Made by a program: the position numbers and the translations under genes. Positions 7,401 to 30,054 of a stretch of DNA of 31,364 bases are shown piece by piece (within the stretch, counting starts at the first letter, position 1; every line of letters starts with the position of its first letter). Where the stretch lies: positions 1 through 31,364 of the forward strand of contig NW_021834759.1 of the NCBI RefSeq assembly GCF_006345805.1. The letters are read 5' to 3'. Source of the DNA: Octopus sinensis. Taxonomy: Eukaryota. Below the pieces are notes generated by a model. The model searched no databases and was not told the DNA's origin. It saw nothing but the letters and a program-made list of their open reading frames with translations.

Positions 7401-10400
7401 GTGAAGTGTCTGTCATGTGTTTATGGTAAGATCATTGATGACCAAACTGGTTGCCATCGGAATTAAGCAAAGATGAGAATAATGTTGGTTAGAGAAGGGC
7501 AGAAGTGAGGGCACAATTTCACGTCATATGTTTAGTGCAGATATAAGAAAGGAAAGACAAACCTAATAAAAGATTGGTGTTATCAAGTGATAATTAAATG
7601 AAATAATGACACAGTTGTTAGATTATGTCGAATGTCTCAAGAGATAAAGGAAATTTTGGAAGGCAGTGTAAATATTGAACTATGACAGGGTAATCCTGTT
7701 CAAACTATAAACATTCTAACCAAAACCATTGTCTTCAACAGTTGATTATCTATGAAAGGAATCCCTGATGTAAAATATAGATTATTAATAAAGATGGAGA
7801 AATTTTTCTATAATGTTTGAAACTTGGAAATATTTATTTCAGTGAATCGAACATTTGAAGTCAAGGAAACACAGACATTGGCTGAACCTGTAGGTGAGTA
7901 TAAAATAACAGCACTTGATTGATTTCTGTAAGGTTTATCCCCTGCTGAACTATTTTGATATCAGAATGATAAAGATCAGCTTCCATTCTTACCTGTCAAT
8001 GGGAAGTTTTAGCATTAAACTAATCATATTAAACATATCGATACTATTGACATTTCATAAAGTATCCAATCAGGTTAGCATGTTTTGGTGAATGGATAAT
8101 TAGAAGCGAAATAGATTTCAGGTTCTCTTTTGGAACAGCCAAATAATATATGTTGTGGTTTAACAGGTGAGGTAATGACAAAGGTTTTGTTTGTTTTATA
8201 CTCTTTAACTCGTTTCAGACTGTCTCCATGCTGGAGCAACACCTTTTTAGTCGAGCAAATCGACCCTAGGACTTATTCTTTGTAAGCCTAGTATTTATTC
8301 TATCGGACTCTTTAGCCAAACCGATGCATTACCTAGACGGAAACACACCAGCACCAGTTGTCAAGCAATGTTGGGAGGACAAACACATACACACATACAT
8401 ACATACATACATACATACATACATACATACATACATACGACGGGCTTCTTTCAGTTCCTGTCTACCAAAGCAATTCACAAGGCTTTGGTTGGCTCGAAGA
8501 TATAGAAGACACTTGCCCAAGGTGCCACACAGTGGGACTGAACCCAGAACCATTTAGTTCGTAAGCAAGCTACTTACCACACAGCCACTCCTACGCCTGT
8601 ATTTTTAAAATGTTTACTGACAAGATATTCTTGTTATTTTAGCTGATGTCTCTTATAATGTGGCAGACTTACAATGAAACGAGTTCCAAATATGACCACC
8701 CTCTTATTTTTCACTGATAATAAATCTATCATTGCATCCAGTAAACATTGTCTTTATTCAAGTGGAAGACGTTGGTTTGCTGCTCAGAAAACCGTTGTCT
8801 CTTTCCCTTTCTTCAAACTTCATAGAGGCTGTATGATACAATACAATCAAATACATTCAAAGAGACATGGGACGGGTTGAAAGAAGAAAGGATAGTGAAC
8901 ACTTTAGATAGCAGCTCCTTAAGAACCCTGCTTACGGTGCTAGGATTCTTTTTGCAGCCGCTAAGAGCAGCAGATTATAACGAAATAAAGATGAAGTGAG
9001 CAAGAATATACAGGAGCTATAAGAGGACCCTGTGTTTCTTGGTTACAAGACCACATCCATACGAACCGTGATTATAGTCCCTATGTTTCAGTAAGTTTTG
9101 ATGGTATTGTATTTTTGCTTCATTTCATAGGAAACACTATGTTGTCGAACATTTCTGTATACGTATTTGACACTAATTAGATGTATTTTATAAAGCATTT
9201 TCGTCCCCTCAGATTTCATTGAACTGAGTTCTCAGCCCCTTCAGAGGCACCGCATTGATTAAGGAGACATCAAAGGAGAGACGGAAGTTTGGTTGATATA
9301 TAGAAGAGGTTGTCAGAAATATCCTAGAGTTTTCAGAATCACTTCCATTCTACCCACCACTTAAGTGGTGTGTGTAATGTGTTTATGGTTAGATCATGGA
9401 TAACCAAACTGGTTGCCATTGGAATTAAGCAAAGATGAGAATAATGTTGGTTAGAGAAGGGCAGAAGTGAGGGCACAATTTCACGTCATATGTTCAGTGC
9501 AGATATAAGAAAGGAAAGACAAACCTAATAAAAGATTGGTGTTATCAAGGGATAATTAAATGAAATAATGACACAGTTGTTAGATTATGTCGAATGTCTC
9601 AAAAGATAAAGGAAATTTTGGAAAGCAGTGTAAATATTAAACTATTACATGGTAATCCTGTTGAAACTATAAACATTCTAACCAAAACCTTTGTCTTCAG
9701 CAGTTGATCATCAATGAAAGGAAAACCTGATATAAAATATAGATTATTAGTAAAGATAGAGAAATTTTTTTTAAATGTTTAAAACTTGGAAATATTCATT
9801 TCAGTGAATCGAACATTTGAAGTCAAGGAAACACAGACATTGGCTGAACCTGTTGGTGAGTATAAAATAACAGCACTTGATTGATTCCTGTAAGGTTTAT
9901 CCCCTGCTGAACTATTTTGATATCAGAATGATAAAGATCAGCTTCCATTCTTACCTTTCAATGGGATGTTTTAGCATTAAACTAATCATATTAAACATAT
10001 CGATACTATTGACATTTCATAAAGTATCCAATCAGGTTAGCACGGTTGGTGAAATGGATAAATTAGAAGCAAAATAGATTTCAGGTTCTCTTTTGGAGCA
10101 GCCAAATAATATATGTTGTGGTTTAACAGGTGAGGTAATGACAAAGGTTTTGTTTGTTTTATACTCTTTAACTCGGTTCAGTCATTTGACTGTCTCCATG
10201 CTGGAGCAACACCTTTTTAGTCGAGCAAATCGACCCTAGGACTTATTCTTTGTAAGCCTAGTACTTATTCTATCGGTCTCTTTAGCCAAACCGATGCATT
10301 ACCTAGACGGAAACACACCAGCACCGGTTGTCAAGCAATGTTGGGAGGACAAACACATACACACATACATACATACATACATACATACATACATACATAC

Positions 10401-13400
10401 ATACATACATACATACATACATACATACATACATACGACGGGCTTCTTTCAGTTCCTGTCTACCAAAGCAACTTACAAGGCTTTGGTTGGCTCGAAGATA
10501 TAGAAGACACTTGCCCAAGGTGCCACACAGTGGTACTGAACCCGGAACCATCTGTTTCGTAAGCAAGCTACTTACCACACAGCCACTCCTATGCCTGTAT
10601 TTTAAAAATGTTTACTGACAAGATATTCTTGTTATTTTAGCTGATGTCGCTCATAATCTGACAGACTTACAATGAAATGCGTTCCAAATATGACCACCCT
10701 CTTATTTTTCACTGATAATAAATCTATCATTGCATCCAGTAAACATTGTCTTTATTCAAGTGGAAGACGTTGGTTTGCTGCTCAGAAAACCGTTGTCTCT
10801 TTCCCTTTCTTCAAACTTCATAGAGGCTGTATGATACAATACAATCAAATACATTCAAAGAGACATCGGACGGGTTGAAAGAAGAAAGGATAGTGAACAC
10901 CTTAGATAAAAGCTCCTTAAGAACCCTTCTGATGGTACTAGGATATTTTTGCCGATGTTAAGTGGGGGAGATTATAATGCACTAAAGATGAAGTGAACAA
11001 GAATATACGGGAGCTATAAGAGGACCCTGTGTTTCTTGGTTACAAGACCACATCCATACGAACCGTGATTATAGTCCCTATGTTTCAGTATGTTTTGATG
11101 GTATTGTGTTTTCGATTCATTTCATAGGAAACACTATGTTGTGGAACATTTCTGTATACGTATTTGACACTAATTAGATGTATTTTATAAAACATTTTAG
11201 AAACATTTTCAATTAGTTGACGTCAATGATCATTAGTGACAAATGTGGTAAAACAGTGATGGTGGAATGGGGTATGAGCAGGGTTTCATATTCCTTGTAA
11301 TGTTGTTAACTACAACATCAGGACGACCGTTTTCTGTCAGGTAAATATTTCTACAGAGGTGTCCATTTTGTCCCCTCAGATTTGATTGAACTGAGTTTTC
11401 AGCCACTTCAGAGGCACCGCATTGATTAAGGGGACATCAAAGGAGAGACGAATGTTTGGTTGATATATAGAAGAGGGTTGTCAGAAATATCCTAGAGTCT
11501 TCAGAATCACTTCCATTCTACCACTTAAAGTGGTGTGTGTAATGTGTTTATGGTTAGATCATGGATAACCAAACTGGTTGCCATTGGAATTAAGCAAAGC
11601 TGAGAATAATGTTGGTTAGAGAAGGGCAGAAGTGAGGGCACAATTTCAAGTCATATGTTTAGTGCAGATATAAGAAAGGAAAGACAAACCTAATAAAAGA
11701 TTGGTGTTATCAAGTGATAATTAAATGAAATAATGACACAGTTGTTAGATTATGTCGAATGTCTCAAAAGATAAAGGAAATTTTGGAAGGCAGTGTAAAT
11801 ATTGAACTATTACAGGGTAATCCTGTTGAAACTATAAACATTCTAACCAAAACCATTGTCTTCAACAGTTGATTATCTATGAAAGAAATCTCTGATATAA
11901 AATATAGATTATTAATAAAGATAGAGAAATTTTTCTATAATGTTTAAAACTTGGAAATATTCATTTCAGTGAATCGAACATTTGAAGTCAAGGAAACACA
12001 GACATTGGCTGAACCTGTTGGTGAGTATAAAATAACAGCACTTGATTGATTCCTCTAAGGTTTATCCCCTGCTGAACTATTTTGATATCAGAATGATAAA
12101 GATCAGCTTCCATTCTTACCTTTCAATGGGAAGTTTTAGCATTAAACTAATCATATTAAACATATCGATACTATTGACGTTTCATAAAGTATCCAATCAG
12201 GTTAGCACGGTTGGTGAAATGGATAAATTAGAAGCAAAATAGATTTCAGGTTCTCTTTTGGAGCAGCCAAATAATATATGTTGTGGTTTAACAGGTGAGG
12301 TAATGACAAAGGTTTTGTTTGTTTTATACTCTTTTACTCGGTTCAGTCATTTGACTGTCACCATGCTGGAGCACCACCTTTTTAGTCGAGCAAATTGACC
12401 CTAGGACTTATTCTTTGTATGCCTAGTACTTATTCTATCTGTCTCTTTAGCCAAACTGCTATGGTACGGGGACGGAAACACACCAGCACCGGTTGTCAAG
12501 CAATGTTGGGAGGACAAACACATACACACATACATACATATATACATACATACATACATACATACATACATACATACGACGGGCTTTGGTTGGTTCGAGG
12601 CTATAGTAGAAGACACTTGCCCAAGGTGCCGCACAGTGGGACTGAACCCAGAACCATCTGTTTCGTAAGCAAGCTACTTACCACACAGCCACTCCTACGC
12701 CTGTATTTTTAAAATGTTTACTGACAAGATATTCTTGTTATTTTAGCTGATGTCTCTTATAATGTGGCAGACTTACAATGAAACGAGTTCCAAATATGAC
12801 CACCCTCTTATTTTTCACTGATAATAAATCTATCATTGCATCCAGTAAACATTGTTGTCTTTATTCAGTGGAAGACGTTGGTTTGCTGCTCAGAAAACCG
12901 TTGTCTCTTTCCCTTTCTTCAAACTTCATAGAGGCTGTATGATACAATACAATCAAATACATTCAAAGAGACCTCGGACGGGTTGAAAGAGAAAGGAAGT
13001 TATATGACTGAAAATATCCAGAAGACTAGAATCCGGAGAATGTCTGTGTGTGTAGAACATGTATTTTAAATCTGGGATACCATATAAAAAGCAAAGAAGA
13101 ATAAAAGGATTCGGATGTAGTATGGCTTGATCTGGCTAATGCTTATTGTTCTGTACCACACACATGGTTGATGGAAACAAGGAATTTCTTTCATAAATGG
13201 GAGGAGATTAAGGATCTGATGATGAGATGCTATAACAGTTTCAAAAATGTTTTCATAGATATGAATTTCACAAAAACTGCCAGGTTCTGGATCTGGAATA
13301 ACTGTAGGTTGCACAATATCAGTTGGTTGGTGATCTTTATAGTTATGCTACTTAGATTAACAGAATGTCCAGAAGAAATTGCTCAACGGAAAGATATTCA

Positions 13401-15736
13401 TGGCTGACATAACAATACTAACAAGAGACTAAAAGGATATGCAAATAGTTCTGGTTAGTAGACTCGATAGAGTAAGTACTTAGTCATGAATGTGGTTTCA
13501 AGCAAATAAGTAATGCAGTCTATAATTTGTGAGAGGTCAGCTGGAGCAAGGAAGTTACGAACGGCAGGAGAACTCATGCCAAAAGTTAAAGACAAACCAA
13601 AAGTTAAAGATGGTGGTACGCTATCTTGTTGACTGATACATGCTGGGGTAGTGAGACCATGGCAAAGCTGAAGATGGACAGAAAACAACTGATAATTCAA
13701 AACTACTAAAAAAAAGCAAAATTTCATGTTTCCAGTTCGATTTATATATTCTTCAGAATAAATTGTTTGTTCTCAATTTGGATATAACTCCTTTGTAATA
13801 ATGTGTACATGAACAGTTATTTTGTAGTTAAGTAGGTTTGGTACAAAAGTACAGTGTTTCAGGATACCTGTTATCGCTTACCTCTCCACCTGTGTAGAAC
13901 TAATCATTGCTCACCTGAAAAAAGTCGCTTATTAAGGAAAATGAATGACATCAAAGTATTTTCAAATATTTCCTTAATCAGATTATATTCTGGTGAAGTG
14001 TGATGTGGTCAGTTAAAAATAAAGATTGCCAACAGTGACCTTTAAAAAAGAGAGCGGGGTTATGTTTATCCTACCTGAAACGATGTGTCATGGTCCGACT
14101 TTTGAGGACCAATTTGGTTGTCATGGAATTAAGTAGAAAACGAGAAGAATGTTGATTAGTGAAGTCTAGAGATGAGAGGACAATCATGTCATAGATTAGA
14201 TTAAATATAAGAAAGAGATTAGCAGTGTTAACAAGGGATTATTAAATGAGATAAGTGCAATGTTGTTAGATTATGTAGGATGTCTTAATAGAGAGAGGAG
14301 ATTGAGGAAGGTCAGTCTATTTAGTAGTAGACCTATATATTGGGTATATTACACGGTCCCATGGTAGAGAGTGTAAAAATGCTGACCAAAGCCATATTAC
14401 TCACCAGTTGACCATTGATTACATGAATGTCTCACAATAATAAAATACAGAATTTAAAGATAAAGAATTTTTACTATGAAGTATAAAACTTGGAAATGTT
14501 TATTTCAGTGCGTCCAAAGTTTAAAGAGAAAGCATCCCAAAGAGTGGCAGAGCCAGTTGGTGAGTATAAAATAACTGTATCTAATTGACGTCTACAAATT
14601 TTACCTCCACCTGAACTACATAATTTGTGTGAATCACTGAGAAGCGGTTCTATTGCTATATTTCATTCGAATGGTTAGCTACAAAGTAATTCTGTTCTAC
14701 TACAAATGCAAGAATATCCAATAAATGGATTTTACGGAAATAGGGAAACATGAGACACAGGAAAAAGATCTCATACGATAAGGAAAAATACAAAAGATAA
14801 AATATAAAACCTGAAGCGGTTCGCTCCCCTTAAGGGGAATATTCTCTCTTTCTATCATCTCGTTGCCATATTGTCATTTCTCTCTCTCTCTCTCTCTCTG
14901 ACTATGGATGCATCTACAAGCCCATTGATATTACTGATTTAAAATTTAATAAAATGTCCAGCAGTGTTGGCGCTGTTGGTAAAATGGCTAAATTAGAAAA
15001 CACAACAGACTTCATATTGTCTTTGGAATAAAGGAAAGCAATTTGTCGTTTAAAGGTAAAAACAGATGAGATAATGAGAGAGCTTGTTTGTTGTACATTT
15101 TAATAAGTTTCCTAATTGTTGTTGTTGTTGTCGGTCTTTTTTAACAAGGTGACTAAGTTGAAGGTCAGTCTATTTAGTAGTAGACCTATATATTGGGTAT
15201 ATTACACGGTCCCATGGTAGAGAGTGTAAAAATGCTGACCAAAGCCATATTACTCACCAGTTGACCATTGATTACATGAATGTCTCACAATAATAAAATA
15301 CAGAATTATTCATAAAGATAAAGAATTTTTACTATGAAGTATAAAACTTGGAAATGTTTATTTCAGTGCGTCCAAAGTTTAAAAGGAAAGCATCCCAAAG
15401 AGTGGCAGAGCCAGTTGGTGAGTATAAACTAACTGTATCTAATTGACTTCTACAAATTTTACCTCTACCTGAACTACATAATTTGTGTGAATAGCGGAGA
15501 ACAGATTCCATTGATACATTTTATTAGAATGGTTAGCTACAAAGTAATTCTATTCTACTACAAATGCAAGAATATCCAATAAATGGGTTTTACGGAAATA
15601 GGGAAACATGAGACACAGGAAAAAGATCTCACACGATAAGGAAAAATACAAGAGATAAAATATAAACCCTGAAGCGGTTCGCTCCCCTTAAGGGGAATAT
15701 TCACTCATTCTATCATCTCATTGCCATATTGTCATT

Positions 15737-15808
<72 letters not shown>

Positions 15809-18800
15809 TATGGATGCATCTAAAAGCCCATTGATATTACTGATTTAAAATTTAATAAAATGTCCAGCAATGTTGGCGCTGTTGGTAAAATGGCTAAATT
15901 AGAAAACACAACAGACTTCATATTGTCTTTGGAATAAAGGAAAGCAATTTGTCGTTTAAAGGCAAAAACAGATGAGATAATGAGAGAGCTTGTTTGTTGT
16001 ACATTTTAATAAGTTTCCTAATTGTTGTTGTTGTTGTCGGTCATTTTTAACAAGGTGACTAAGTTGAAAATTGTTACAAGTGTGAACACCCTCTCTTTTT
16101 TTCACTGATAGTAAATCTATCATTACATCCCCTAAACGTTGTGTTTATCCCAGTAGGAGACTTTGGTCTGCTGCTGAGACAATTGCTCTCTTTCTCTCTC
16201 CTCAAGATTGGGTGCAAGATACAATGCAATCGATTATAGTGTCTTCATCATCGAATTGGCTGGGTGGTCACTATCCATGTCCTTATTCAGAATTACTGTC
16301 CACCTCGATTGCTTGAGAAACACATCTCCCTTAAACATTCCCCATTTTCTATAGTGGTATGTCACCGACCACTTTATAAAGGGTCCTGAGTACTTTTTAA
16401 TGTGGCAATAGCACTAGAAAGAGTTTCATGTGTCCAACATTGAAACTAGAATAACTGCAGATTGCACAAATCCAGTCACTTGGATTATGCTTGTTATGGG
16501 GATGCTTTTATGGGGATTAGCAGATTTATCAGAAGAAATTACTGAAAGAAATCACTTAAGAAGGCATTCGTGGATGACATAAAATACTAAGAAGAGATCA
16601 GATGTATGTGCAAATAGTTCTGGATAGACTAATTACTCGGTCAAGAATGCAGTTTAAGGCAAATAATTAGCAGTAGAAATTACGCCAAAGATCAAAGAGA
16701 AACCTGTAAAAGGTTTCGGACACTGGCACGCTACTTCGTCATCTAAAACTAGGAGAGGCATTGAGATTAGCGAAAGATAAATCTAAATTACGGGGAGCAC
16801 TTACAAGATTTCCTGCTTCCCGTTTGATTTATATGCTCGTCTTGCTTATATAATTCTGGAGTTTCATTTCTTATGTAACATTTCAGATATATATTCTCAG
16901 TGAATCTTGTACCACTCGACACGACTAAAAGTAGAGTAAAGGAACTTGACTAAATACAGAACTGCCAGTGGCAGTTGACAGCGTTGATCGTCCAAATTGG
17001 TTACTCTGCTAGCTTAATACCGTAACTACGTTGGGGTAGTACGGAGTGCGTTCTCTGTGAACATATCAATTCTGCAATAAGGTGTTCTAGATAACCATAT
17101 CCAAATATTATTGTTCTAGATAACCATATCCAAATATCTACTGTTCTTACACGCAACGTGTACGTGCGCGCCATAACGTATGTTCATCACAGTAATCTGA
17201 GAATGAGCTGTTAGTGAGGTTTTGTGAAAGTGTATTGTGTTTTATGACAGCTGAAACACTTTCTGTTGGTCTAATCATTGCTTACCATTGTTTTTAATAT
17301 ATTTCCTGAATCTGATGACCTTCTGAGGAACTGTGATGCCAGGAGTTAAATATTACCAGCGGCAACCTTTAAGAAAGGGAACCGCTCAGTATGCATCCTA
17401 CGGATGATTAGAACTGGTTCCTTCAGTGGTCAGCGTGGTCTAGTGGGCTGAAACACAAATCAGGAAATACAAGATCACAAAGCTATTGACCAAGGTTCAA
17501 ATCTTGCTGGAGACAGTATTTTAGAAAGTAGCAGGAGGACACCTAGGAGTTATGAGCTGGGTGTGCCCGGCTCATTAAGAGTGTCATGTATAAGGACCGA
17601 AACATTTGTGGGATGGGAGTTCTTCCTTGAAGATCTCTCCTGCTGTGTGTTCACTTGAAAGAGCTTCTCTTGCTTTGTTTTCACTCCGTGTTTATCCTAG
17701 TTGAAGTGGTATGTCATGTGTTTGTAGAGAGATATTTGATGACCAGCTTGGTTGAAATCAGAATTAAGGAGAAATTGAGAAGAATATTGGTTGACCAAAA
17801 CTGGAAGTAAGAGGAGAATACCGTGTTTTAGATGTGGCACAAATGTAAGAAAGGAAAAAAAGCAGAAGAGACACACAGGGTTGTCAAGTGATAATTAAAT
17901 GAGATAGTTACCACATTGTTAGATTATATAGAAAGAAGAAATTTATGAAGATTAGTCTATTTTGTTGTAGTCATGATATTGAGCTATAGATAATATAAGA
18001 ATGCTAACCAAAGCCACAGTGGTCTCCCATCATGCAGTGATGATAGGTAACTCTTGCTATAATATTCTATAGATTATTAATGCAAATTTACACATTTTAC
18101 TATAGATTATAACACTTGGAAATATTTTTTTCAGGGATTCAGCTGCCACGAAAGCAACACCTTATGAATGTAGCAGAGGAATTAGTTGATGACTGGTTTC
18201 TAGCTGGTGAGTATAATTGATTTCTGTCAATTTTACCTTCCCTGAGCTATTTTGTTTGTCGGAATTACTGGGAAATTCTTCCATTTACCGACAGATTTGT
18301 AAAATTCTTTCCACATGTGACAATCCCGATATGTTCCTGGCAGAATGTAATCAAATATGCCTTTTAAAACATGATAGCTTGTCCTTTTAATACAATTTAG
18401 CTGTTATACCTACCGGTTGAAGCATCCACATGCCTCATTGGGTCATTGTTCACTCCCAGGTGTGACAGGATTGTGGTGGGCTTGATCTGTACTTATTTTA
18501 AGCATTTGTAATCCATGTTCCACACATAATTTGTTTTAGGTTGATAGACAAGTGTTACTTCTAGATTGTTTATTGTACTGTCTTGAGAAAAAAAAATCAA
18601 GTATTATTTTGGAGTTCTAAATAAGTTTTTATTAACCTCTCGGAGACTTACTGACACCCTACTCTATTTTACCATCCCTTTTCAAACTCAACTTTTCCCT
18701 GTCATCTCAGTATTAGATCGCCTCCACCGGCTCAATCTTTATTTCTCATTTACTTTTTTGCCTTCATGTGCATGGCCTTGAAGTAATGTTTAAGGATCTG

Positions 18801-21800
18801 GAGAAACAGGGTTCAGTGAAGTAGTGATATAATATTTGTGTAGCTGATGTTGCGCGAAAGCCCTCTACATTTCTACATGTTCCAAAGTCCATTACATTTT
18901 TACATGTTCAAAAGCCCTCTACATTTTTACATGTTAAACCATGTACCCCAGGTCCCTAATTGTTTCTATCTAAATAGTCACATCCTTAGGGACGCTGCTG
19001 TCAATGTAAATGAAATGTAAGTTAAGACTGATAAGATTGTTGAAATGCTAGACTGGAAGTATGTAGACGTGGGTTGCATGCAAGAGGTTAGGTGGAGGGG
19101 TGTCTCAGTAAAACTCTTCACAGACAAAGATTATTGGTATAAAATCTCCTGGAAAGGCAAGTGTGATAGCGCACCGTGAGAAAATGGATGCATAAAGTGA
19201 ACAAGTTAAAGTGTGCGATTGGATCAGGATTACTGCACAAACAAAAGGATCACTTTTATGGTGTTCTCATGCAAACTACTACAATGATGACCTTATTTTT
19301 ATGGTTGGTGGCTTCAGTGAACATGATGAGCAGCGATCCCGTGGATTCTATGGTGTCAAATGAGGAAGAAACAAGGCTATTAGAGTTCTATGTTGTAAAT
19401 AATCTAATGATCTACAACACTAACTTTAGGAAACCATACAGTCACATGATCACCTATCAATATGGTAGGTACACAATCCAGAGTGACTTCACTCACCAGA
19501 GAGTGAGAAAGGTGTTGGGCAGTACATTCTTCTCAAATGAAGAAGACGGAAGTGTGGGAGAGGAGTGTGTACATAGTGGATTTTAAAAAATGACATATGG
19601 GAGTGCTACTATGAAAGGTTATTCAATGAGGAGAATGCATAGGCGAATGAGTTTTATCAATTTGGATTCAATAGGGGGAGTAGCCAACCAAATCGACAGA
19701 AGTATGTTAGATAAAGCAACTAAGGCATATCGATCATGAATCACTGCCAAGGTACTTAAACTATGTGATAGAATGGGCTATGGCCTAGTCGATATATGTA
19801 GTTATTTAGGTGGTGCAGAAAGGTGCATATAGTTAGCCAGTTTGTTTGTGAAGGAAGGCATTATACTCCAGGACTGGTACAGCAGCAAATTACTTCACCA
19901 GGGCTTTTATCACTGCCTTTAAGACCTTAACAAAGCAGTTTAAGATCGGTTGCCTGTGTGAACTCTTTTATGCTGATTACATTGTTCTTATAATTGAGTG
20001 AATAATATAATTAGTAAAGAAATATAAGAAGCAAAAGCTGGAAACACAAGGCATTAAAATTACCTTCGCAAATATCAAAGACCTAGTTAGCAGCAAAACA
20101 TATAGTACACCAACCAACCCCTTCAGAAAAATGGCTCAGGTCAATGTGTTTGCAGAAATTCCATATAGTACAGTCAGTAGATAAATACGATGTGCTGGGA
20201 AGATAACGGAGAAAGTAGTGTTTGTATGTGGCAGATGTGCAGACATAATAAATACTAAGAACACGAAATTCTTTTTTAATGTCCAGGAGGATACTTGGAG
20301 GTAGTTGATAGTTTCTGTTGCTTATGTGATCAAATCTGTAGATGAGGAGGATACGCAGAATGTATAGTTGCTAGAAAAAAGATAGGATGGAGAAACTTCA
20401 GGGAGCTGTTACCTATGTTGGTAGCGGAAGTTGTCTCTCATAGTGAAACGAAGATTGTATGACGCTAGTGCATGGAGAGCAATTCAACATTGTAGTGATG
20501 TGTGATTTGTGAATGCAGAGGACATACAAAGACTAGAAAGAATGGAAGCCAGCATTCTTCACTGTAAGTGCAATGTCAATGTGGATATACACCCAAATGT
20601 GTGCTCAGACGAAAATTGGGTAGGATATACATCAGGGGTTGTGTGCAAGGTTTGGATATAAGATACAGGTGGATGAAAGCAGGTGCATAAAGAAGAGCTA
20701 ATTGCTAAATGTAGATGGAAGTCATGGACGTGGGTGGCCCAGGAAGATGGGGAAGGAATCAATTGGAACCAGTCAGAGGTTGTTGAGCCTCATGGTGTAG
20801 TAGACAAAAAGGGCTGCAATGAATGATGAAATCATCATTCATTGCAGCCCTTTTTGTCTACTACACCATGAGGCTCAACAACCTCTGACTGGTTCCAATT
20901 GATTCCTTCCCCATCTTCCTGGGCCACCCACGTCCATGAATTCCATCTACATTTAGCAATTAGCTCTTCTTTATGCACCTGCTTTCATCCACCTGTATCT
21001 TATATCCAAACCTTGCACACAACCCCTGATGTATATCCTACCCAATTTTCGTCTGAGCACACATTTGGGTGTATATCCACATTGACATTGCACTTACAGT
21101 GAAGAATGCTGGCTTCCATTCTTTCTAGTCTTTGTATGTCCTCTGCATTCAATAGGATGTGGAAAAGTTGTCTAACATATTCACACTTGGAAAAATGGAT
21201 GTATGATGAAGACAATGAACTTGTTAGGAAACTGATTTTATCAGAGCATCTGGCTGGTGCTTCTTGCCTTACTGCAAGACGTATGACAAGACGATAATTT
21301 CTCAAACCATGTTTGAGAAATCCTATTCGACTCAGTAAAAATTATGTTCTTAATGCATATTCTTTTTGCTTAAGCTCTTACACCTAATCTCTATATATCA
21401 ATCTTAAAACCATCCGTTATCCACTTTTCTTACCATTGCAACTTCAGCTGCTGTAATTAAAGGGGGACATCCATCTCCCTTTTCTCTTACCAGTTATCTT
21501 TCCTCTAAGAACCACTTCCCTTGTCATGCATTATGCACTCCCAGCATCATTCCTTGCGACTATATTTCCACTGCATGCCCCTTACCCCTTAAACGTCCTA
21601 TAACTCACTACCTCCACACCAGTGCACCTCCGTCTTCATCCACAAACACTTCTCATCAACTCCTTATTTCCCATCTACCTACGCTTTTATTCAACTTTTG
21701 TTTATTAAACTTTTCCTCCATCACTACCATTATCTTTCTTTGTGTCTTCTCACCTATCTGCTCTCCTTTCTTGACTCACTCTAATTTTCTCAACATTTCC

Positions 21801-24800
21801 CCCAAACCGCTATTCACCAATATCTAAGCGTCCTTCCATATTTGCCATTCACTGCATTTACTCCTAGCCTCATCTCTACTGACTGTCACTCTTCTTTCAC
21901 ACTATCATGACTCTACCCAGCCTCCCACACCCCCGTCCAGTCTCCGTCTTGTTGAGGACTTGTGGTCCTTAATTGTATGTGGTGTGGGGTTGCCGTCTAT
22001 CCCCTGGCCAGTCTGTTCCTCTGTATTTTTGTTGTAGTTCTTTAGCCCCCTGGTCAATTATATAGCCATGTTTCTAAACAGACAAGCACCTTTGTTGATT
22101 ATGTTAATGGACGGGATCAACGCAGCACTGTAAGTTAATGAAACTCTCACCAATTATGAAATAATTATCCTAACAATGGATGTAAACTCAACTTGATTTT
22201 GTTTCTCAATTTTCCTTTATTTTACAATAGCCGTATGGAAAGGCATGAACATCACAATACCTCATTTCCCCTTCATTGAAAGTGTAACATCAAATAACAT
22301 TTAGACGAAGTTTCTATTATTGAAAGGAACGCCTTGTTCCTCCCTATGGTACCTATTTACATTTACCAAGACATGAATTGTTGATGTCTGTGACTACAGC
22401 TCCAGACAATGTCCTCTCAGTTAGCTTATAGAAGTGATTTATCTAAATTAAGAGAGGACATCATCTATGACATTATCGTCTTGTCATACGTCTTGCAGTA
22501 AGGCAAGAAGCACCAGCCAGATGCTCTGATAAAATCAGTTTCCTAACAAGTTCATTGTCTTCCATACTCTTATCTTCCTAACAAGTTCATTGTCTTCCAT
22601 ACTCTTATCTTCCTAACAAGTTCATTGTCTTCCATACTCTTATCTTCCTAACAAGTTCATTGTCTTCCATACTCTTATCTTCCTAACAAGTTCATTGTCT
22701 TCCATACTCTTATCTTCCTAACAAGTTCATGGTCTTCCATACTCTTATCTTCCTAACAAGTTCATGGTCTTCCATACTCTTATCTTCCTAACAAGTTCAT
22801 TGTCTTCCATACTCTTATCTTCCTAACAAGTTCATTGTCTTCCATACTCTTATCTTCCTAACAAGTTCATTGTCTTCCATACTCTTATCTTCCTAACAAG
22901 TTCATTATCTTCCATACTCTTATCTTCCTAACAAGTTCATTATCTTCCATACTCTTATCTTCCTAACAAGTTCATTGTCTTCCATACTCTTATCTTCCTA
23001 ACAAGTTCATTGTCTTCCATACTCTTATCTTCCTAACAAGTTCATTGTCTTCCATACTCTTACCTTCCTAACAAGTTCATTGTCTTCCATACTCTTATCT
23101 TCCTAACAAGTTCATTGTCTTCCATACTCTTATCTTCCTAACAAGTTCATTATCTTCCATACTCTTATCTTCTAACAAGTTCATTGTCTTCCATACTCTT
23201 ATCTTCCTAACAAGTTCATTGTCTTCCATACTCTTATCTTCCTAACAAGTTCATTGTCTTCCATACTCTTATCTTCCTAACAAGTTCATGGTCTTCCATA
23301 CTCTTATCTTCCTACAAGTTCATTGTCTTCCATACTCTTATCTTCCTAACAAGTTCATTGTCTTCCATACTCTTATCTTCCTAACAAGTTCATTGTCTTC
23401 CATACTCTTATCTTCCTAACAAGTTCATTGTCTTCCATACTCTTATCTTCCTAACAAGTTCATTATCTTCCATACTCTTATCTCCTAACAAGTTCATATC
23501 TTCCATACTCTTATCTTCCTAACAAGTTCATTGTCTTCCATACTCTTATCTTCCTAACAAGTTCATTGTCTTCCATACTCTTATCTTCCTAACAAGTTCA
23601 TTGTCTTCCATACTCTTACCTTCCTAACAAGTTCATTGTCTTCCATACTCTTATCTTCCTAACAAGTTCATTGTCTTCCATACTCTTATCTTCCTAACAA
23701 GTTCATTATCTTCCATACTCTTATCTTCCTAACAAGTTCATTGTCTTCCATACTCTTATCTTCCTAACAAGTTCATTATCTTCCATACTCTTATCTTCCT
23801 AACAAGTTCATTGTCTTCCATACTCTTATCTTCCTAACAAGTTCATTGTCTTCCATACTCTTATCTTCCTAACAAGTTCATTAACTTCCATACTCTTATC
23901 TTCCTAACAAGTTCATTGTCTTCCATACTCTTATCTTCCTAACAAGTTCATTATCTTCCATACTCTTATCTTCCTAACAAGTTCATTGTCTTCCATACTC
24001 TTATCTTCCTAACAAGTTCATGGTCTTCCATACTCTTATCTTCCTAACAAGTTCATTATCTTCCATACTCTTATCTTCCTAACAAGTTCATTATCTTCCA
24101 TACTCTTATCTTCCTAACAAGTTCATTGTCTTCCATACTCTTATCTTCCTAACAAGTTCATTGTCTTCCATACTCTTATCTTCCTAACAAGTTCATTATC
24201 TTCCATACTCTTATCTTCCTAACAAGTTCATTGTCTTCCATACTCTTATCTTCCTAACAAGTTCATTATCTTCCATACTCTTATCTTCCTAACAAGTTCA
24301 TTGTCTTCCATACTCTTATCTTCCTAACAAGTTCATTGTCTTCCATACTCTTATCTTCCTAACAAGTTCATTAACTTCCATACTCTTATCTTCCTAACAA
24401 GTTCATTGTCTTCCATACTCTTATCTTCCTAACAAGTTATTGTCTTCCATACTCTTATCTTCCTAACAAGTTCATTGTCTTCCATACTCTTATCTTCCTA
24501 ACAAGTTCATGGTCTTCCATACTCTTATCTTCCTAACAAGTTCATTATCTTCCATACTCTTATCTTCCTAACAAGTTCATTGTCTTCCATACTCTTATCT
24601 TCCTAACAAGTTCATTATCTTCCATACTCTTATCTTCCTAACAAGTTCATTGTCTTCCATACTCTTATCTTCCTACAAGTTCATTATCTTCCATACTCTT
24701 ACCTTCCTAACAAGTTCATGGTCTTCCATACTCTTATCTTCCTAACAAGTTCATTGTCTTCCATACTCTTATCTTCCTAACAAGTTCATTATCTTCCATA

Positions 24801-27800
24801 CTCTTATCTTCCTAACAAGTTCATTGTCTTCCATACTCTTATCTTCCTAACAAGTTTATTGTCTTCCATACTCTTATCTTCCTAACAAGTTCATTATCTT
24901 CCTAACAAGTTCATTGTCTTCCATACTCTTATCTTCCTAACAAGTTCATTATCTTCCATACTCTTATCTTCCTAACAAGTTCATTATCTTCCATACTCTT
25001 ATCTTCCTAACAAGTTCATTTTCTTCCATACTCTTATCTTCCTAACAAGTTCATTGTCTTCCATACTCTTATCTTCCTAACAAGTTCATTATCTTCCATA
25101 CTCTTATCTTCCTAACAAGTTCATTGTCTTCCATACTCTTATCTTCCTAACAAGTTCATTATCTTCCATACTCTTATCTTCCTAACAAGTTCATTATCTT
25201 CCATACTCTTATCTTCCTAACAAGTTCATTTTCTTCCATACTCTTATCTTCCTAACAAGTTCATTATCTTCCATACTCTTATCTTCCTAACAAGTTCATT
25301 GTCTTCCATACTCTTATCTTCCTAACAAGTTCATTGTCTTCCATACTCTTATCTTCCTAACAAGTTCATTGTCTTCCATACTCTTATCTTCCTAACAAGT
25401 TTATTATCTTCCATACTCTTATCTTCCTAACAAGTTCATTGTCTTCCATACTCTTACCTTCCTAACAAGTTCATTATCTTCAATACTCTTATCTTCCTAA
25501 CAAGTTCATTGTCTTCCATACTCTTATCTTCCTAACAAGTTCATTGTCTTCCATACTCTTATCTTCCTAACAAGTTCATTATCTTCCATACTCTTATCTT
25601 CCTAACAAGTTCATTGTCTTCCATACTCTTATCTTCCTAACATGTTCATTATCTTCCATACTCTTATCTTCCTAACAAGTTCATTATCTTCCATATTCTT
25701 ATCTTCCTAACAAGTTCATTGTCTTCCATACTCTTATCTTCCTAACAAGTTCTTCATTACTTCCATACTCTTATCTTCCTAACAAGTTCATTGTCTTCCA
25801 TACTCTTATCTTCCTAACAAGTTCATTGTCTTCCATACTCTTATCTTCCTAACAAGTTCATTGTCTTCCATACTCTTATCTTCCTAACAAGTTCATTGTC
25901 TTCCATACTCTTATCTTCCTAACAAGTTTATTATCTTCCATACTCTTATCTTCCTAACAAGTTTATTATCTTCCATACTCTTATCTTCCTAACAAGTTCA
26001 TTATCTTCCATACTCTTATCTTCCTAACAAGTTCATTGTCTTCCATACACTTATCTTCCTAACAAGTTCATTATCTTCCATACTCTTATCTTCCTAACAA
26101 GTTCATTGTCTTCCATACTCTTATCTTCCTAACAAGTTCATTGTCTTCCATACTCTTATCTTCCTAACAAGTTCATTATCTTCCATACTCTTATCTTCCT
26201 AACTAGTTCATTGTCTTCCATACTCTTATCTTCCTAACAAGTTCATTATCTTCCATACTCTTATCTTCCTAACAAGTTCATGGTCTTCCATACTCTTATC
26301 TTCCTAACAAATTCGTTGTCTTCCGTACTCTTATCTTCCTAACAAGTTCATTATCTTCCATATTCTTATCTTCCTAACAAGTTCATTGTCTTCCATACTC
26401 TTATCTTCCTAACAAGTTCATGGTCTTCCATACTCTTATCTTCCTAACAAGTTCATTGTCTTCCATACTCTTATCTTCCTAACAAGTTCATTGTCTTCCA
26501 TACTCTTACCTTCCTAACAAGTTCATTGTCTTCCATACTCTTATCTTCCTAACAAGTTCATTGTCTTCCATACTCTTATCTTCCTAACAAGTTCATTATC
26601 TTCCATACTCTTATCTTCCTAACAAGTTCATTGTCTTCCATACTCTTATTCCTAACAAGTTCATTGTCTTCCATACTCTTATCTTCCTAACAAGTTCATT
26701 ATCTTCCATACTCTTATCTTCCTAACAAGTTCATTGTCTTCCATACTCTTATCTTCCTAACAAGTTCATTGTCTTCCATACTCTTATCTTCCTAACAAGT
26801 TCATTGTCTTCCATACTCTTATCTTCCTAACAAGTTCATTGTCTTCCATACTCCTCCCATACCTGAAACTATCTCCTTTCTTGTACATTATCTCTGATTC
26901 TTTCAAGAATCTCACATTTTCTTCCAGATCATTTCTTCCCCCAGAATCTCTCTTCACATTTCTAGTGAAATATGCTCGCATCATTTCTTGCCAGTTTTCA
27001 TACATCCTCCATATTCAATGTAAAATAGCATGTAACAAATACACATCATATAATAATCTGTGGTTCATTTGGAGACACATTGTTGTTCTTACTACGAACT
27101 GTTCGTGTATATCTGCTACATAAACCCTTCCCCTCTATCAATATGACTACAATTCCACTGCACCTATTAAGTACACCATATAGTATTCCTATTACCCCAC
27201 ATTCTATTATCCTGCTTATCAGATATGGTGACTTCCCAGCAGTTGATGCATGTGTTTGGATGCAGTGATTCCTTTGGAATTGAAACCTTGTATGTGTATG
27301 GTGTAGATGGTGGTGACTCCTACCTTCTTTCTTACAAACTAAAACTCTTCTCATTTACAGGTCTACTTAAAAACCTCTCCATTATTAGAATTTCTGTAAA
27401 CTGTGGCCTTGATCCTTAGACAGATATCTTCATTATGAGTCATGAACCCAGAAAAGTTAGTCTGATGTCCCCTATAACATGTGATGTGTACCAAAGTGTA
27501 TTATATGTTGCGCTTTGTGTCATTGAGGTCAATCGGGTATTTTGTCTATTTGTATTTTAATTATCTGAGGTGTACCTAATATGACTGATATTGTTTGATA
27601 TACTAGTCCCCACTTTCTACATATTTCTAAATTTTGAAACTTTATAATTATTAATTAGCCAGAGGAGATCAGTTAGTGTGACTGCTTCTTCTCTCTGATG
27701 GTCGTTCAGGCTCTCATACACTTTGGCCTACACAAACCCTTCTACCATTTGTTTACCATAAATTTTCTCAATTGTAATTTTCAAATTTATTTTTAATTTC

Positions 27801-28225
27801 TTTTCCATCGTCATCCTTTATTATTCATTTATTCCAGCTTCTCCGATATTCTTCTCAACATCCTTAGAAATAGACAACAATGTCGAATATGAATCCTAAT
27901 TATTTTTACTTCTCCACTGATGTCGTTTCTTTAGTAAATTTATAACAACCTTCAGTACTCATCGTTTATATTATTGTTAATGTTGTTGCAGTCATTTCTT
28001 GTTGTTTCTTTTGCAGGTATTTTGTTAGAAATAAAATCTACCAAGCTGTATATTCTCAACCGTAACATTCGTAATGACGTTGTAAAACGGAACTATGAGA
28101 TGTTGTGTGAATGGTTTATGACTTGTGATCCAAAGAGATGTACATTCGATACATTGAAAGACGTCCTTAAAGAGATAGACTGTTATGGTGCGCTTGAATG
28201 TCTACCACGAGGCGTAATAAAGTGA
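1352..28225 (+). CDS. Spliced gene, 5'-partial: repetitive linker plus C-terminal Death-fold domain. Exons 1352-1429, 7843-7893, 9805-9855, 11970-12020, 14509-14559, 15367-15417, 18135-18206, 28017-28225
   Basis: All internal exons have AG/GT ends, lengths divisible by 3, phase 1-1, and no stops. Joined: EAPKFEDRCVQREATCQELGAASQAI (VNRTFEVKETQTLAEPV)x3 VRPKFKEKASQRVAEPV VRPKFKRKASQRVAEPV GIQLPRKQHLMNVAEELVDDWFLA GILLEIKSTKLYILNRNIRNDVVKRNYEMLCEWFMTCDPKRCTFDTLKDVLKEIDCYGALECLPRGVIK*. The last ~90 aa fit the Death-domain pattern (VAEEL..dW..aG..L.i ... ML.eW ... T...L..vL.eI). Confidence 0.75.
1682..1976 (-). mobile_element. RTE-family LINE/SINE 3' end with (ATG)n tail
   Basis: (CAT)8-cgtttaacgtccgt followed by sequence homologous to the RTE 3' UTRs at 3670-4020 (opposite strand) and 28618-28900. 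Confidence 0.8.
2004..2358. repeat. ~350-bp direct duplication, copy 2
   Basis: Matches 111-460. Confidence 0.9.
2360..2600 (-). mobile_element. Old degenerate RTE LINE C-terminal relic
   Basis: Minus strand reads RNEVSI...ELEAKL...AQERR...IKKCQEIQVEG, resembling the RTE C-terminus (cf. RDEVSM...VQERRL...KCHSLTVEG at 3340-3530). Confidence 0.6.
2620..4022 (+). mobile_element. 5'-truncated RTE-clade non-LTR retrotransposon (RT C-half, C-terminus, 3' UTR), frameshifted
   Basis: VHQGSVLSPLL, PWEPLYGDDLAL, LEVVNSFCYLGD, RLCWYGHVLRM and GRPRKTW motifs across shifted frames; 3' UTR ends gaaccgtccaaccca. Confidence 0.9.
5180..7090 (+). mobile_element. Decayed Sola-type (DDD) DNA transposon; transposase relic ~6040-7075
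   Basis: HHFIAE...LLDFTE*NYSFVVQDALQGFH...IHPFTIYYK, SICVISDCLKHD, YFSDGAADQYKN and VEWHF motifs with stops and frameshifts. Subfamily and termini unresolved. Confidence 0.6.
7843..7893 (+). CDS. Exon B1 (51 nt): VNRTFEVKETQTLAEPV
   Basis: tatttatttcag|TGAATC...CCTGTAG|gtgagtata; phase 1-1, open. Confidence 0.72.
8195..8598 (-). mobile_element. tRNA-derived SINE with internal (CATA)11
   Basis: Minus-strand head aggcgtaggagtggctgtgtggtaag (A box), ggttcagtccc (B box), then ccttgggcaagtg core. Confidence 0.85.
9805..9855 (+). CDS. Exon B2 (51 nt): VNRTFEVKETQTLAEPV
   Basis: tattcatttcag|...CCTGTTG|gtgagtata. Confidence 0.72.
10157..10596 (-). mobile_element. SINE paralog with (CATA)18
   Basis: Same position within the module as 8195-8598. 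Confidence 0.85.
11970..12020 (+). CDS. Exon B3 (51 nt): VNRTFEVKETQTLAEPV
   Basis: Identical to exon B2, same splice sites. Confidence 0.72.
12322..12702 (-). mobile_element. SINE paralog with ~12 CATA units and a ~38-bp internal deletion
   Basis: acgacgggc joined directly to tttggttgg. Confidence 0.85.
13000..13730 (+). mobile_element. Relic of a restriction-like-endonuclease (R2/NeSL/HERO-type) LINE reverse transcriptase
   Basis: CVEHVF*IWDTI*KAKK, VVWLDLANAYCSVPH (from 13114), GITVGCTIS; many stops. Confidence 0.7.
14509..14559 (+). CDS. Exon C1 (51 nt): VRPKFKEKASQRVAEPV
   Basis: tgtttatttcag|TGCGTC...CCAGTTG|gtgagtata; phase 1-1. Confidence 0.72.
15367..15417 (+). CDS. Exon C2 (51 nt): VRPKFKRKASQRVAEPV
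   Basis: Same splice sites; GAG to AGG (E to R) relative to C1. Confidence 0.72.
15741..15804. repeat. (TC)~32 microsatellite
   Basis: Direct reading; the paralog at 14879-14898 is (TC)10. Confidence 0.95.
16330..17640 (+). mobile_element. Second R2/HERO-type LINE relic, paralogous to 13000-14050
   Basis: AFVDDI (gcattcgtggatgacata) and tgcaaatagttctgg are shared with ~13400-13455; 17270-17380 resembles 13900-14050. Boundaries approximate. Confidence 0.5.
18135..18206 (+). CDS. Exon D (72 nt): GIQLPRKQHLMNVAEELVDDWFLA, Death-domain helix 1 and start of helix 2
   Basis: acttggaaatatttttttcag|...CTAGCTG|gtgagtataa; joins in frame to 28017. Confidence 0.8.
18857..18936. repeat. ~27-bp minisatellite, 3 copies
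   Basis: aaagccctctacatttytacatgtt unit, middle copy diverged. Confidence 0.8.
18990..20760 (+). mobile_element. Degenerate, internally deleted RTE LINE (APE, RT, C-terminus)
   Basis: VDVGCMQEVRWRG (endonuclease), YYERLFNEEN, ELFYAD, LEVVDSFC and GRGWPRK-like remnants. Confidence 0.8.
20510..21151. repeat. Foldback palindrome: 320-bp arms, 2-nt loop, 1 mismatch
   Basis: 20510-20829 is the reverse complement of 20832-21151 except 20721/20940; the mirrored ORFs 20559-20762(-) and 20899-21102(+) differ by one residue. Confidence 0.97.
21208..22562. repeat. Perfect 91-bp inverted repeat pair (21208-21298 / 22472-22562)
   Basis: Base-by-base reverse-complement match. Confidence 0.95.
22540..26853. 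repeat. 35-bp tandem satellite, ~123 copies
   Basis: Unit ttcctaacaagttcattgtcttccatactcttatc; main variants cattg/catta/catgg and occasional 1-nt deletions; no spacers. Confidence 0.97.
26841..27015 (-). mobile_element. RTE C-terminal relic from which the satellite emerges
   Basis: Homologous to 2430-2595 (cttccatactcctcccata...tcatttctt..cagttttcatacatcctc); reads RYGRSMEDNELVRK. Confidence 0.65.
28017..28225 (+). CDS. Terminal exon E: Death-domain helices 2-6 and stop
   Basis: Pyrimidine tract gttgtttcttttgcag; G|GT ATT TTG...AAG TGA; MLCEW and TFDTLKDVLKEI motifs. Confidence 0.82.
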
Positions 28226-28467
28226 ATTTTTGTGTAAATCTTGCTGCTTGACCACACAAAGACTTATGATGAAATGCATTCCAGTCAGGACCCTCTTCTC
28301 TTTATTCTACATATAGAAAAACCAAGTACAACATTGTCCAACATGTCCTACTTTAAGGTGACGATGTATGAATTAAGGATTTGGCTGCTAATTTTAGTAA
28401 ATCCACTTTACCACATACAATATCCCTTGCTGGTTTGGCTCCACTGTTGTTAGAGATTAGCATTTGA

Positions 28468-28473: not shown

Positions 28474-28617
28474 GATAAACCTTCAAATTTTCGTTTGTTC
28501 TTGTTGCTGTATATCTAAGCACCTCCCTAAACGCTTTCATTTTGTTTTATAGTCAGATTTCACATCCTCTGGTATGTTGATAGTCATCTACCTTCAGAGA
28601 ATTATGTATATATATAT

Positions 28618-30054
28618 CATCATCATCATCATCATCATTTAACGTCCGTTCTCCATGCTAGCATGGGTTGGACGGTTCAACTGGGGTCTGGGGAGCCCGA
28701 AAGCTGCACCAGTCCAGTCTTGATCTGGCAGTGTTTCTACAGCTGGATGCCCTTCCTAACGCCAACCACTCCGAGAGTGTAGTGGGTGATTTTATGTGCC
28801 ACCGACACAGGTGCCAGACGAGGCTGGCAAACGGCCACGCTCGGATGGTGTTTTTTATGTGCCACCGACACAGGTGCCAGACGAGGCTGGCAGACGGCCA
28901 CACTCGGATGGTGTTTTTATGTGCCACCGACACAGGTGCCAGATGAGGCTGGCAAACGGCCACGATCGGATGGTGTTTGTTACGTGCCCACAGCACGGAG
29001 GCCAGTCGATGCGGTACTGGCTACGGCCACGTTCGGATGGTTTTCTTGTGTGCCACGTGCCACCGGCACTGGTACCACAAAGATACAAATTCCATTGATG
29101 TTCATCTATTTTGATTTGTTTTGATTTTCACTTGCCTCAACAGGTCTTCACAAGTGTCACAGGAAGGAAGGTATGCACAGGTGGACTAACTACGTCCCAG
29201 GTAGGGGCCACAGGTTATGGCCTGACTAGTCTTGCCGGGTCTTCGGATGGTGTTTTTATGTGCCACCGACACAGGTGCTAGATGAGGCTGGCGAACGGCC
29301 ACGACCGGATGGTGTTTGTTATGTGCCCACAGCACGATGGCCAGTGATGCGGTACTGACTACGGCCACGTTCGGATGGATTCTTGTGTGCCACCGGCACT
29401 GGTACCACAAGCGGTACTGACTACGGCCACGTTCGGATGGATTCTTGTGTGCCACCGGCACTGGTACCACAAATATACAAATTCCATTGATGTTCATCTA
29501 TTTTGATTTGTTTTAATTTTCACTTGCCTCAACAGGTCTTCACAAGTGTCACAAGAAGGAAGGTATGTACAGGTGGACTACGTCCCAGGTAGGGCCCACG
29601 GGTTATGACCTGACTAGTCTTGCCGAGTCTTCGGATGGTGTTTTTATGTGCCACCATGTTCCCACAGCACGGAGGCCAGTCGATGCGGTACTGGCTACGG
29701 CCACGTTCGGATGGTTTCTTGTGTGCCACAGGCACTGGTACCACAAAGATACAAATTCCATTGATGTTCATCTATTTTGATTGATTTTCACTTGCCTCAG
29801 CAGGTCTTCACAAGTGTCACAAGAAGGAAGGTATGCACAGGTGGATCGACTACGTCCAGGTAGGGGCCACGGGATATGGCCTGACTAGTCCTGCCGGGTC
29901 CTCTCATGCACAGCACACTTCCATAGGACTCGGTCTTCAGTCATTTCCTTGGTGAGACCTAAAGTTCGAAGGTCGTGCTTCACCACCTCGTCCCAGGTTT
30001 TCCTGGGTCTACCTCTTCCACAGGTTCCCTCAACTGCTAGGGTGTAGCACTTTT
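28618..30054 (-). mobile_element. 5'-truncated RTE 3' end with expanded 3' UTR repeats and (ATG)7 tail
   Basis: AVEGTCGRGRPRKTWDEVVKHDL at ~30040-29960; ~62-bp units from 28796; ~230-bp block present three times. Confidence 0.85.

Follow-up and report, generated by a model that had tools for sequence, protein, structure and literature searches.

Copies of a death-domain helix-1 exon as probable spacer cassettes in an octopus Ank-RING-linker-death-domain gene

The 31,364-nt stretch of DNA analyzed here (the window) is an unplaced Octopus sinensis scaffold (NW_021834759.1, assembly GCF_006345805.1) that holds the 3' part of LOC118761746, a member of an octopus family of proteins composed of ankyrin repeats (Ank), a RING domain, a linker, and a death domain (DD). 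The exons encoding the linker of this gene probably arose by tandem duplication of exon D, which encodes the first helix of the DD, and were exapted as frame-neutral spacer cassettes; we give this explanation a probability of about 0.65. The evidence that carries it is the homology of the exon modules, their frame properties, a serial gene model, and the linker-variable isoforms of paralogues. An earlier note, made from the sequence alone, had read the linker exons as degenerate copies of D that might serve as alternative helix-1 cassettes, and had offered simple exaptation as a spacer as its fallback, which fits best. The locus would be a clear record of a fragment of a folded domain recycled into a linker, in which the flanks reveal descent from the first DD exon and the peptides are now nearly unlike. 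As tandem exon duplication it is tidy but ordinary, a new example of a known process.

Under the proposed mechanism, the ancestral module would have been a phase 1-1 exon coding for helix 1 of the DD plus the N-terminal half of helix 2, together with ~450 nt of the preceding intron and 150 nt or more of the following one. Tandem duplication would have followed, for which unequal crossing-over between the flanks of the module is the most likely route. The upstream copies would have lost the DD core residues, and two classes of them another 21 to 27 nt. All copies would have retained both splice sites (acceptor and donor), an open phase 1 frame, and a length in multiples of three. They would now be spliced serially as a spacer, downstream of the RING and ahead of D, the true helix-1 exon. 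Any subset of them could be skipped without a frameshift, yielding combinatorial cassette exons that vary the RING-DD spacing, with D normally retained; copies would have undergone birth and death after duplication.

Exon modules of LOC118761746 and its death domain

Eight exons of the window, spliced in phase 1 in the order A-N1-N2-N3-R1-R2-D-E, gave a 203-aa product that corresponded with 100% identity and coverage to XP_036355787.1 (P0001; uncharacterized LOC118761746, partial, Octopus sinensis). The window has a GC content of 32 to 40% and long noncoding stretches, with mini-exons bounded by canonical AG/GT, features typical of animal DNA. The partial gene model on the scaffold begins with exon A, and the Ank/RING exons of LOC118761746 lie off the scaffold. 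The same linker and C terminus follow ankyrin repeats and a zf-C3HC4_3 RING in P0002, the 326-aa orthologue of O. vulgaris, and precomputed Ank and PF13920 hits were present for P0002 and paralogues. The same Ank-RING-linker-DD plan was found in ~40 related octopus proteins. The family is apparently octopus restricted. A profile search for more distant DD relatives returned octopus proteins only. Literature searches found no description of the family or of the LOC118761746 locus. True MIB1/2 proteins are defined by MIB/HERC2 and ZZ domains. Both were absent from the domain hits listed for P0002 and its paralogues, a family that NCBI names MIB-like E3 ligase.

Seven of the eight exons are modules with common intron flanks: A, three NRTF-type exons, two RPKF-type exons (B and C of the earlier note), and D. 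Their positions, together with the flanks of D and the terminal exon, are as follows.

1352-1429, + strand: linker exon A, 78 nt, phase 1-1, APKFEDRCVQREATCQELGAASQAI; found in P0001 at 100% identity
7843-7893, + strand: linker exon N1 (NRTF type), 51 nt, NRTFEVKETQTLAEPV; absent from the exons listed by the earlier note
9805-9855, + strand: linker exon N2 (NRTF type), 51 nt, NRTFEVKETQTLAEPV; in the second copy of a ~2-kb tandem unit
11970-12020, + strand: linker exon N3 (NRTF type), 51 nt, NRTFEVKETQTLAEPV; in the third copy of the ~2-kb unit
14509-14559, + strand: linker exon R1 (RPKF type; B of the earlier note), 51 nt, RPKFKEKASQRVAEPV
15367-15417, + strand: linker exon R2 (RPKF type; C of the earlier note), 51 nt, RPKFKRKASQRVAEPV
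17987-18134, + strand: upstream intron flank of D, homologous to all linker upstream flanks and ending in the conserved ACTTGGAAATATTTTTTTCAG
18135-18206, + strand: exon D, 72 nt, phase 1-1, IQLPRKQHLMNVAEELVDDWFLA; DD helix 1 and first half of helix 2, with the conserved Trp
18207-18320, + strand: intron flank downstream of D, homologous to the corresponding linker flanks minus 15 nt just after the donor
28017-28227, + strand: terminal exon E, stop codon included, GILLEIKSTKLY...ECLPRGVIK*; remainder of the DD

All seven modules are of phase 1-1, have a length that is a multiple of 3 (78, 51, or 72 nt), and are open only in phase 1. Tandem exon duplication predicts matching phases at the two ends and a length in multiples of 3, and 7 of 7 modules show both. 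Each module is also frame-compatible with E, as the earlier note had stated; it had likewise placed D at its exact coordinates. The splice sites of D are an acceptor of ...tttttttcag/GG and a donor of G/gtgagt, and the exon is open in phase 1 only. The introns between modules span 0.8 to 6.4 kb. The flanks of exon A (1195-1351 and 1430-1578) matched the module profiles, the ~2-kb tandem units carrying the N exons share 92 to 93% identity, and R1 and R2 lie in a ~0.86-kb tandem unit (14307-15162 versus 15160-16068, 91%).

Exons D and E together appear to form a complete DD. The D+E segment of the window matched the Pfam Death family (PF00531) with an E value of 1.5e-4 (22.3 bits against a cutoff of 22.6; residues 7 to 85), and precomputed PF00531 hits were present for paralogues P0003 and P0006. 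A family D+E profile, built from seven segments, matched the solved DDs of RIPK1 (3e-7), ankyrin-3 (1e-5), and PIDD (4e-5), and also those of CRADD, FADD, and Fas. The alignment covered positions 3 to 81, which points to homology with solved DDs across the whole domain. Because it started at position 3 or 4, exon D was taken to encode helix 1 and to end midway through helix 2.

Four core residues of the D exon (L9, A13, L16, and W20) are invariant in the family. The R and N types keep only A13, have no LGxxW segment, end in AEPV, and carry a Pro. The A type keeps only L16, has a Ser at the Trp position, and is two residues longer than D. The observations of the earlier note that the Trp occurs in D only and that B and C end in GCAGAGCCAGTTG, without the segment kept in D, hold. 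In an AlphaFold2 (AF2) model of P0001, built from an 18-sequence alignment, five helices, against the six of the DD bundle fold, were predicted in residues 117 to 195 at a predicted local distance difference test (pLDDT) score of only 50 to 61; residues 1 to 115, the linker, had no secondary structure (pLDDT of <50), and the mean pLDDT was 43.8. Modeling of linker-plus-E combinations, suggested by the earlier note, was carried out for an A+E chimera (mean pLDDT of 55.8), in which the A part scored 31 to 44 and the C-terminal E helices 63 to 78. With such shallow alignments and low confidence, the AF2 models are too weak to judge helix-1 competence.

Intron flanks, exon bodies, and origin of the linker exons

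The relationship among the modules was most apparent in their introns. The 21-nt acceptor flank ACTTGGAAATATTTATTTCAG occurred seven times at ≤1 mismatch, always on the + strand (dinucleotide-shuffle expectation, 0.00), and each of the seven sites precedes an exon and then GTGAGTATAA. In 22 modules from four loci (the window; L001, the orthologous locus of O. vulgaris; and the paralogue loci L002 and L003), the 150 nt examined on each side were alignable. When the window was compared with itself using blastn, the upstream homology of D extended over ~430 nt (17690-18140 versus the N/R upstream regions; E values of 1e-17 to 6e-24). To avoid circularity, nhmmer profiles were made from linker modules without any D module. 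These D-free profiles matched the flanks of D in the window (17987-18134, E = 1.7e-16; 18214-18286, E = 9e-10) and at the other four loci (E values of 1e-12 to 1e-25); there were zero off-target matches in ~154 kb and zero on the minus strand, the 31-kb window included. The O. vulgaris orthologue and three paralogues have their modules arranged as in the window.

Homology also ran across the intron-exon boundary. R1 and its upstream intron aligned with the D module of L003 at 74.8% over 465 nt (E = 2e-49), with 81% identity over the 100 intron positions next to the exon and 68% within the exon itself. Judged from such alignments, the neighboring exons appear homologous together with their flanking introns, as tandem exon duplication entails. 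Flank alignment and D-free profiles both grouped D with the linkers, in agreement with the common origin proposed by the earlier note. That note had ascribed the same intron flanks to A, B, C, and D, which is right and understated: there are seven modules rather than four, the three NRTFEVKETQTLAEPV exons having been missed. The most conserved part of the modules is the 40 nt next to each splice site (-40 to -1 and +1 to +40; majority fractions of 0.84 to 0.95), which exceeds the exons in conservation and fits selection on common splice signals. In the tree of module flanks that the earlier note had called for, classes A, N, and R were well supported, but the deep nodes were unresolved and star-like.

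A repeated unit of ~0.6 to 2 kb with conserved ends, in a region rich in other repeats, could be a fragment of a transposable element that was exonized repeatedly. However, the copies are all in one orientation, in tandem, and located only between the RING and DD exons in the 154 kb examined; an ancient protein domain includes one of them, D, as an integral part; and no transposable-element protein domain was found nearby. We regard this origin as scarcely credible.

Within the exons, the similarity was clearest for the D exons of paralogues, the D of the window being a divergent member among family D exons. Needleman-Wunsch (NW) alignment of paralogue D exons gave z scores of 3.7 to 5.6 against A-type exons and 2.9 to 4.5 against R-type exons, and in the acceptor-anchored register 27 to 29 of 51 positions matched between paralogue D and R (p < 0.0002). 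Profile-profile comparison placed D and R/N in register (P = 0.004), and also A and R/N (P = 0.0009), protein-level comparison of exon-peptide profiles being weakly informative because the peptides are 17 to 26 residues long. As the earlier note had seen, A and D are collinear at their 3' ends: AGGAATTAG sits 21 nt from the donor in both, and the 9-nt run in the donor-anchored register had a p value of 0.0002 by shuffling. Taken together, the homology of the flanks and the significant exon-body similarity of paralogue D exons support a common ancestor of the linker exons and D.

If the exons were instead unrelated, with flanks made alike by gene conversion or by selection acting on a shared splicing element, the lack of significant similarity between the D exon body of the window and the linkers would be expected, as would the concentration of conservation in the 40 nt at each splice site. 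Exchange between loci does occur, since A-type units of ~2 kb are 92 to 95% identical between paralogues whose DDs are 33 to 39% identical. However, the flanks of different classes are 25 to 45% diverged and star-like, not homogenized, and the homology spans the intron-exon boundary. Moreover, A and R exons show significant similarity to the D exons of paralogues in alignments that keep both splice sites in register, and lengths and phases are conserved. An origin from unrelated exons is therefore very improbable.

The most parsimonious direction of duplication is from D to linker, because D+E is a complete, ancient domain. For the 51-nt exons, an internal deletion is the more parsimonious origin. 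The alignment of R1 with the D of L003 shows a donor-like GTGATT within D, whose activation was considered as their origin and rejected because the donor flank of the 51-nt exons is homologous to that of the 78-nt A, which keeps a D-like 3' end upstream of its donor.

Modules have been both gained and lost. The N type is present three times in the window and once in O. vulgaris, and the A type is present one to four times among paralogues. Decayed modules at the paralogue loci include a linker exon with a GT-to-CT change in its donor, relics of 49 nt that break the frame but sit within intact flanks, and orphan flanks with no exon. They lie at the following positions.

L003: 16612-16662, 18678-18726, and 10187-10316
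L004: 8767-8815 and 4860-4988
L002: 10181-10272

The A-type exons were no better conserved than their introns (5.4% versus 3.0% divergence; 44 nonsynonymous to 26 synonymous changes).

Annotated isoforms and the use of exon D

Splicing was assessed from annotated isoforms and gene models only, as a proxy for reads. The sole NCBI model of LOC118761746 (XP_036355787.1) carries all eight exons in series. The best-sampled paralogue, on a 46.6-kb contig, has seven isoforms with linker contents of L1L2L3 (X1 and X2), L1L2, L1L3, L2L3, L1, and L2 (through X7), each followed by D+E, so that D is retained in 7 of 7. Linker-exon content also differs between P0004 and P0011 and between P0013 and P0039, and the O. 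vulgaris orthologue has two R exons in the genome and one in the model. For LOC115230672, isoform X1 comprises linker+D+E, X2 comprises D+E, and X3 (P0031) is RING-linker-E. The exon skipped in X3 is the D module at L004 11334-11405, as verified from the layout of the locus. Elsewhere, the RING exon is joined straight to an E-type exon in O. vulgaris CAJ1099279.1 (P0045), and the products of LOC115213394 contain an E-only partial DD. Isoforms that differ by single symmetric exons, the hallmark of combinatorial cassette exons, are thus found in paralogues (X1 to X7 of the paralogue on the 46.6-kb contig, X1 to X3 of LOC115230672, and P0013/P0039), with one model for LOC118761746. Linker length in the Ank-RING-linker-DD family accordingly varies by exon copy number between species, paralogues, and annotated isoforms, and the linker exons would function as spacers.

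Several models of the family read into conserved flanks. P0012, P0017, P0018, P0041, P0042, and P0022 have GEYKIIVPN* or GEYI* as their C terminus, which is what the conserved donor flank GTGAGTATAAAATAATAGTTCCCAATTGA encodes (window 1430-1458 and equivalents). They run into the intron after a linker or D exon, are without a DD, and may represent truncated genes, intron retention, or artifacts. In O. vulgaris P0040, five extra residues (EIFIS) precede the RPIF linker and are encoded by the conserved acceptor flank (G)AAATATTTATTTCAG, within which the exon of this model begins, 15 nt early.

We also considered that the linker exons might be prediction artifacts, that is, splice-site-bearing intronic repeats rarely included in real mRNA. 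The exons are known here from gene models, are tiny, repetitive, and weakly constrained, and the O. vulgaris and O. sinensis models differ in linker number. Against this, 7 of 7 modules keep a phase 1 frame, a length divisible by 3, and AG/GT, nearby decayed copies are excluded from the models, the O. vulgaris orthologues of the exons are conserved, and many independent paralogue models use the same exon types. The NCBI pipeline normally reports alternative isoforms only with transcript support, which also counts against artifacts. On balance, this explanation is improbable.

The use of D bears on the proposal of the earlier note that the linkers and D are alternative partners for E, so that skipping of D would yield a DD with a substituted or missing helix 1, a possible nonsignaling decoy or dominant negative. 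All modules are phase 1-1 with near-identical splice signals, so that any of them can be joined to E in frame, and the flanks at -40 to -1 and +1 to +40 are more conserved than the exons, as expected of regulated alternative exons. Products of the required kind are annotated in LOC115230672 X3 (RING-linker-E), in P0045 (RING to E), and as the E-only partial DD of LOC115213394. However, the sole model of LOC118761746 carries every exon serially, and D is kept in all seven isoforms of the best-sampled paralogue; the D-skipped models may be splicing noise or annotation artifacts. In addition, the linkers keep one of four core residues, and the 51-nt classes have no LGxxW and contain a Pro, so that they cannot be equivalent helix-1 cassettes; in the low-confidence AF2 model of A+E, the A part had a pLDDT of 31 to 44.

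Nor is exclusivity enforced. A mechanism was sought at the window locus in the form of a frameshift on joint inclusion, a too-short intron, or RNA pairing, and none was found: the frame is kept on joint inclusion and the introns are long. RNA pairing between module flanks (docking/selector or exon looping) was rejected, since upstream-versus-downstream duplexes had z scores of -2.1 to +1.1 relative to shuffles, both within modules and between successive ones. An Rfam scan of the window returned no family. A mutually exclusive cluster has one member per transcript and structurally equivalent members; in the annotation models, the LOC118761746 product has all seven modules and the paralogue isoforms have one to three linkers plus D, and the linker exons are not equivalent in length or core residues. 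The helix-1 cassettes of the earlier note are thus not supported. Its D-skipped decoy has a counterpart in two annotated models (LOC115230672 X3 and CAJ1099279.1) but not in LOC118761746, for which there is only the serial model, and we consider it unlikely as an account of these exons. A further, quite doubtful extension is that the conserved flanks form a splicing-control element through which the family chooses, separately for each gene, between D and a degenerate copy joined to E, yielding DD-dead E3 ligase isoforms as regulated dominant negatives of DD assemblies. If D skipping were regulated, the family would provide a natural DD on/off switch, which is speculative at present.

Several observations weigh against the spacer explanation, in which D of LOC118761746 would be used constitutively. 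Over the whole exon, the D of the window was not significantly similar to the linkers (NW z of 0.2 to 1.5), and the profile comparison of D with A was not significant (P = 0.37). The flank tree was star-like and the D modules formed no clade; the order of the duplications and the direction from D to linker are consequently what we infer rather than what the tree demonstrates. Annotation includes products without D for a paralogue (P0031) and for O. vulgaris (P0045), so that D is not strictly constitutive across the family. Serial inclusion is a prediction of the Gnomon gene model. The AF2 models of P0001 and A+E, both of low confidence and from shallow alignments, provide weak corroboration. 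Lastly, the N-type exons were better conserved than their flanks (2.0% versus 6.9%, with three synonymous and zero nonsynonymous changes, i.e., few events), which hints at a sequence-specific role beyond that of a passive spacer.

In titin, the PEVK exons form an array of short symmetric cassettes that together encode an extensible or disordered linker. The linker of LOC118761746 resembles it in having many small in-phase exons generated by tandem duplication, a low-complexity spacer, and a variable exon number that could tune length. It differs in that the array is small and that its source would be a piece of the folded domain next to it rather than a linker exon that already existed.

The closest precedent is the H2d-H2a helix repeat of vertebrate COE/EBF, a tandem exon duplication with serial (mandatory) inclusion (PMC2394523). 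In both cases, tandem duplication of an exon for one helix gave a copy that is spliced in alongside the original and lengthens the protein by a repeated segment. In contrast to COE/EBF, LOC118761746 has six surviving copies in three length classes with core residues lost; the copies apparently act as a spacer, not as a second functional helix, and inclusion is variable in paralogues rather than mandatory. Compared with substitutions and mutually exclusive exons derived from tandem duplication (PMC8373072), the modules share adjacency of homologous exons, homologous flanks, matching phase, and location in one gene, but their lengths are 51, 78, and 72 nt, their core residues are not preserved, they are included jointly in the model, and no exclusivity mechanism was found. 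By analogy, the D-skipped product annotated in one paralogue, with its incomplete DD, may be a decoy-type molecule comparable to TRAIL-R4/DcR2 (PMC9500463) and MyD88S (PMC8772076). TRAIL-R4, however, is encoded by its own gene, and MyD88S lacks the intermediate domain rather than a part of the DD, which differs from the skipping of D.

Repeats and other features of the scaffold

The long intron between D and E contains a block that is absent from the O. vulgaris orthologue.

18724-27467, no strand assigned: block in the D-E intron absent from the O. vulgaris orthologue, 8.7 kb; holds a 642-bp palindrome and a 4.3-kb 35-bp satellite

In O. vulgaris, the D-E intron is ~1.3 kb, and the sequence flanking the 8.7-kb block is 98 to 99.7% identical between the species. 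The satellite (22540-26853) consists of ~124 copies of the 35-bp unit TTCCTAACAAGTTCATTGTCTTCCATACTCTTATC at 96 to 97% identity, with a GC skew of approximately -0.7. The palindrome (20510-21151) is 99.4% identical to its own reverse complement over 642 bp and carries identical 67-aa open reading frames (ORFs) on both strands; it could be a foldback element or an assembly artifact.

The ~2-kb unit containing the N exon is triplicated at 7406-12997, each copy with a (CATA)n-type microsatellite, and is present as one copy in O. vulgaris. The copies differ by 7 to 8% from each other, compared with ~2% between the species; either the triplication is older than the species split, with later copy loss, or it was collapsed in the O. 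vulgaris assembly. The A-type units of ~2 kb (window 27-1973, L002, and L003), given their 92 to 95% identity between paralogues with DDs that are 33 to 39% identical, indicate recent exchange or spread between loci (concerted evolution).

Pfam searches of the repeat-borne ORFs, including those near 28600-29800, gave nothing significant, with sub-threshold chance matches only. The region at 28600-29800, just downstream of the gene, is GC rich (43 to 51%) and contains 62- to 63-bp tandem repeats at 28790-28988 and 29349-29472. Related copies occur at 1750-1970 and 3769-3985 and at the paralogue loci, and the block looks like a dispersed repeat.

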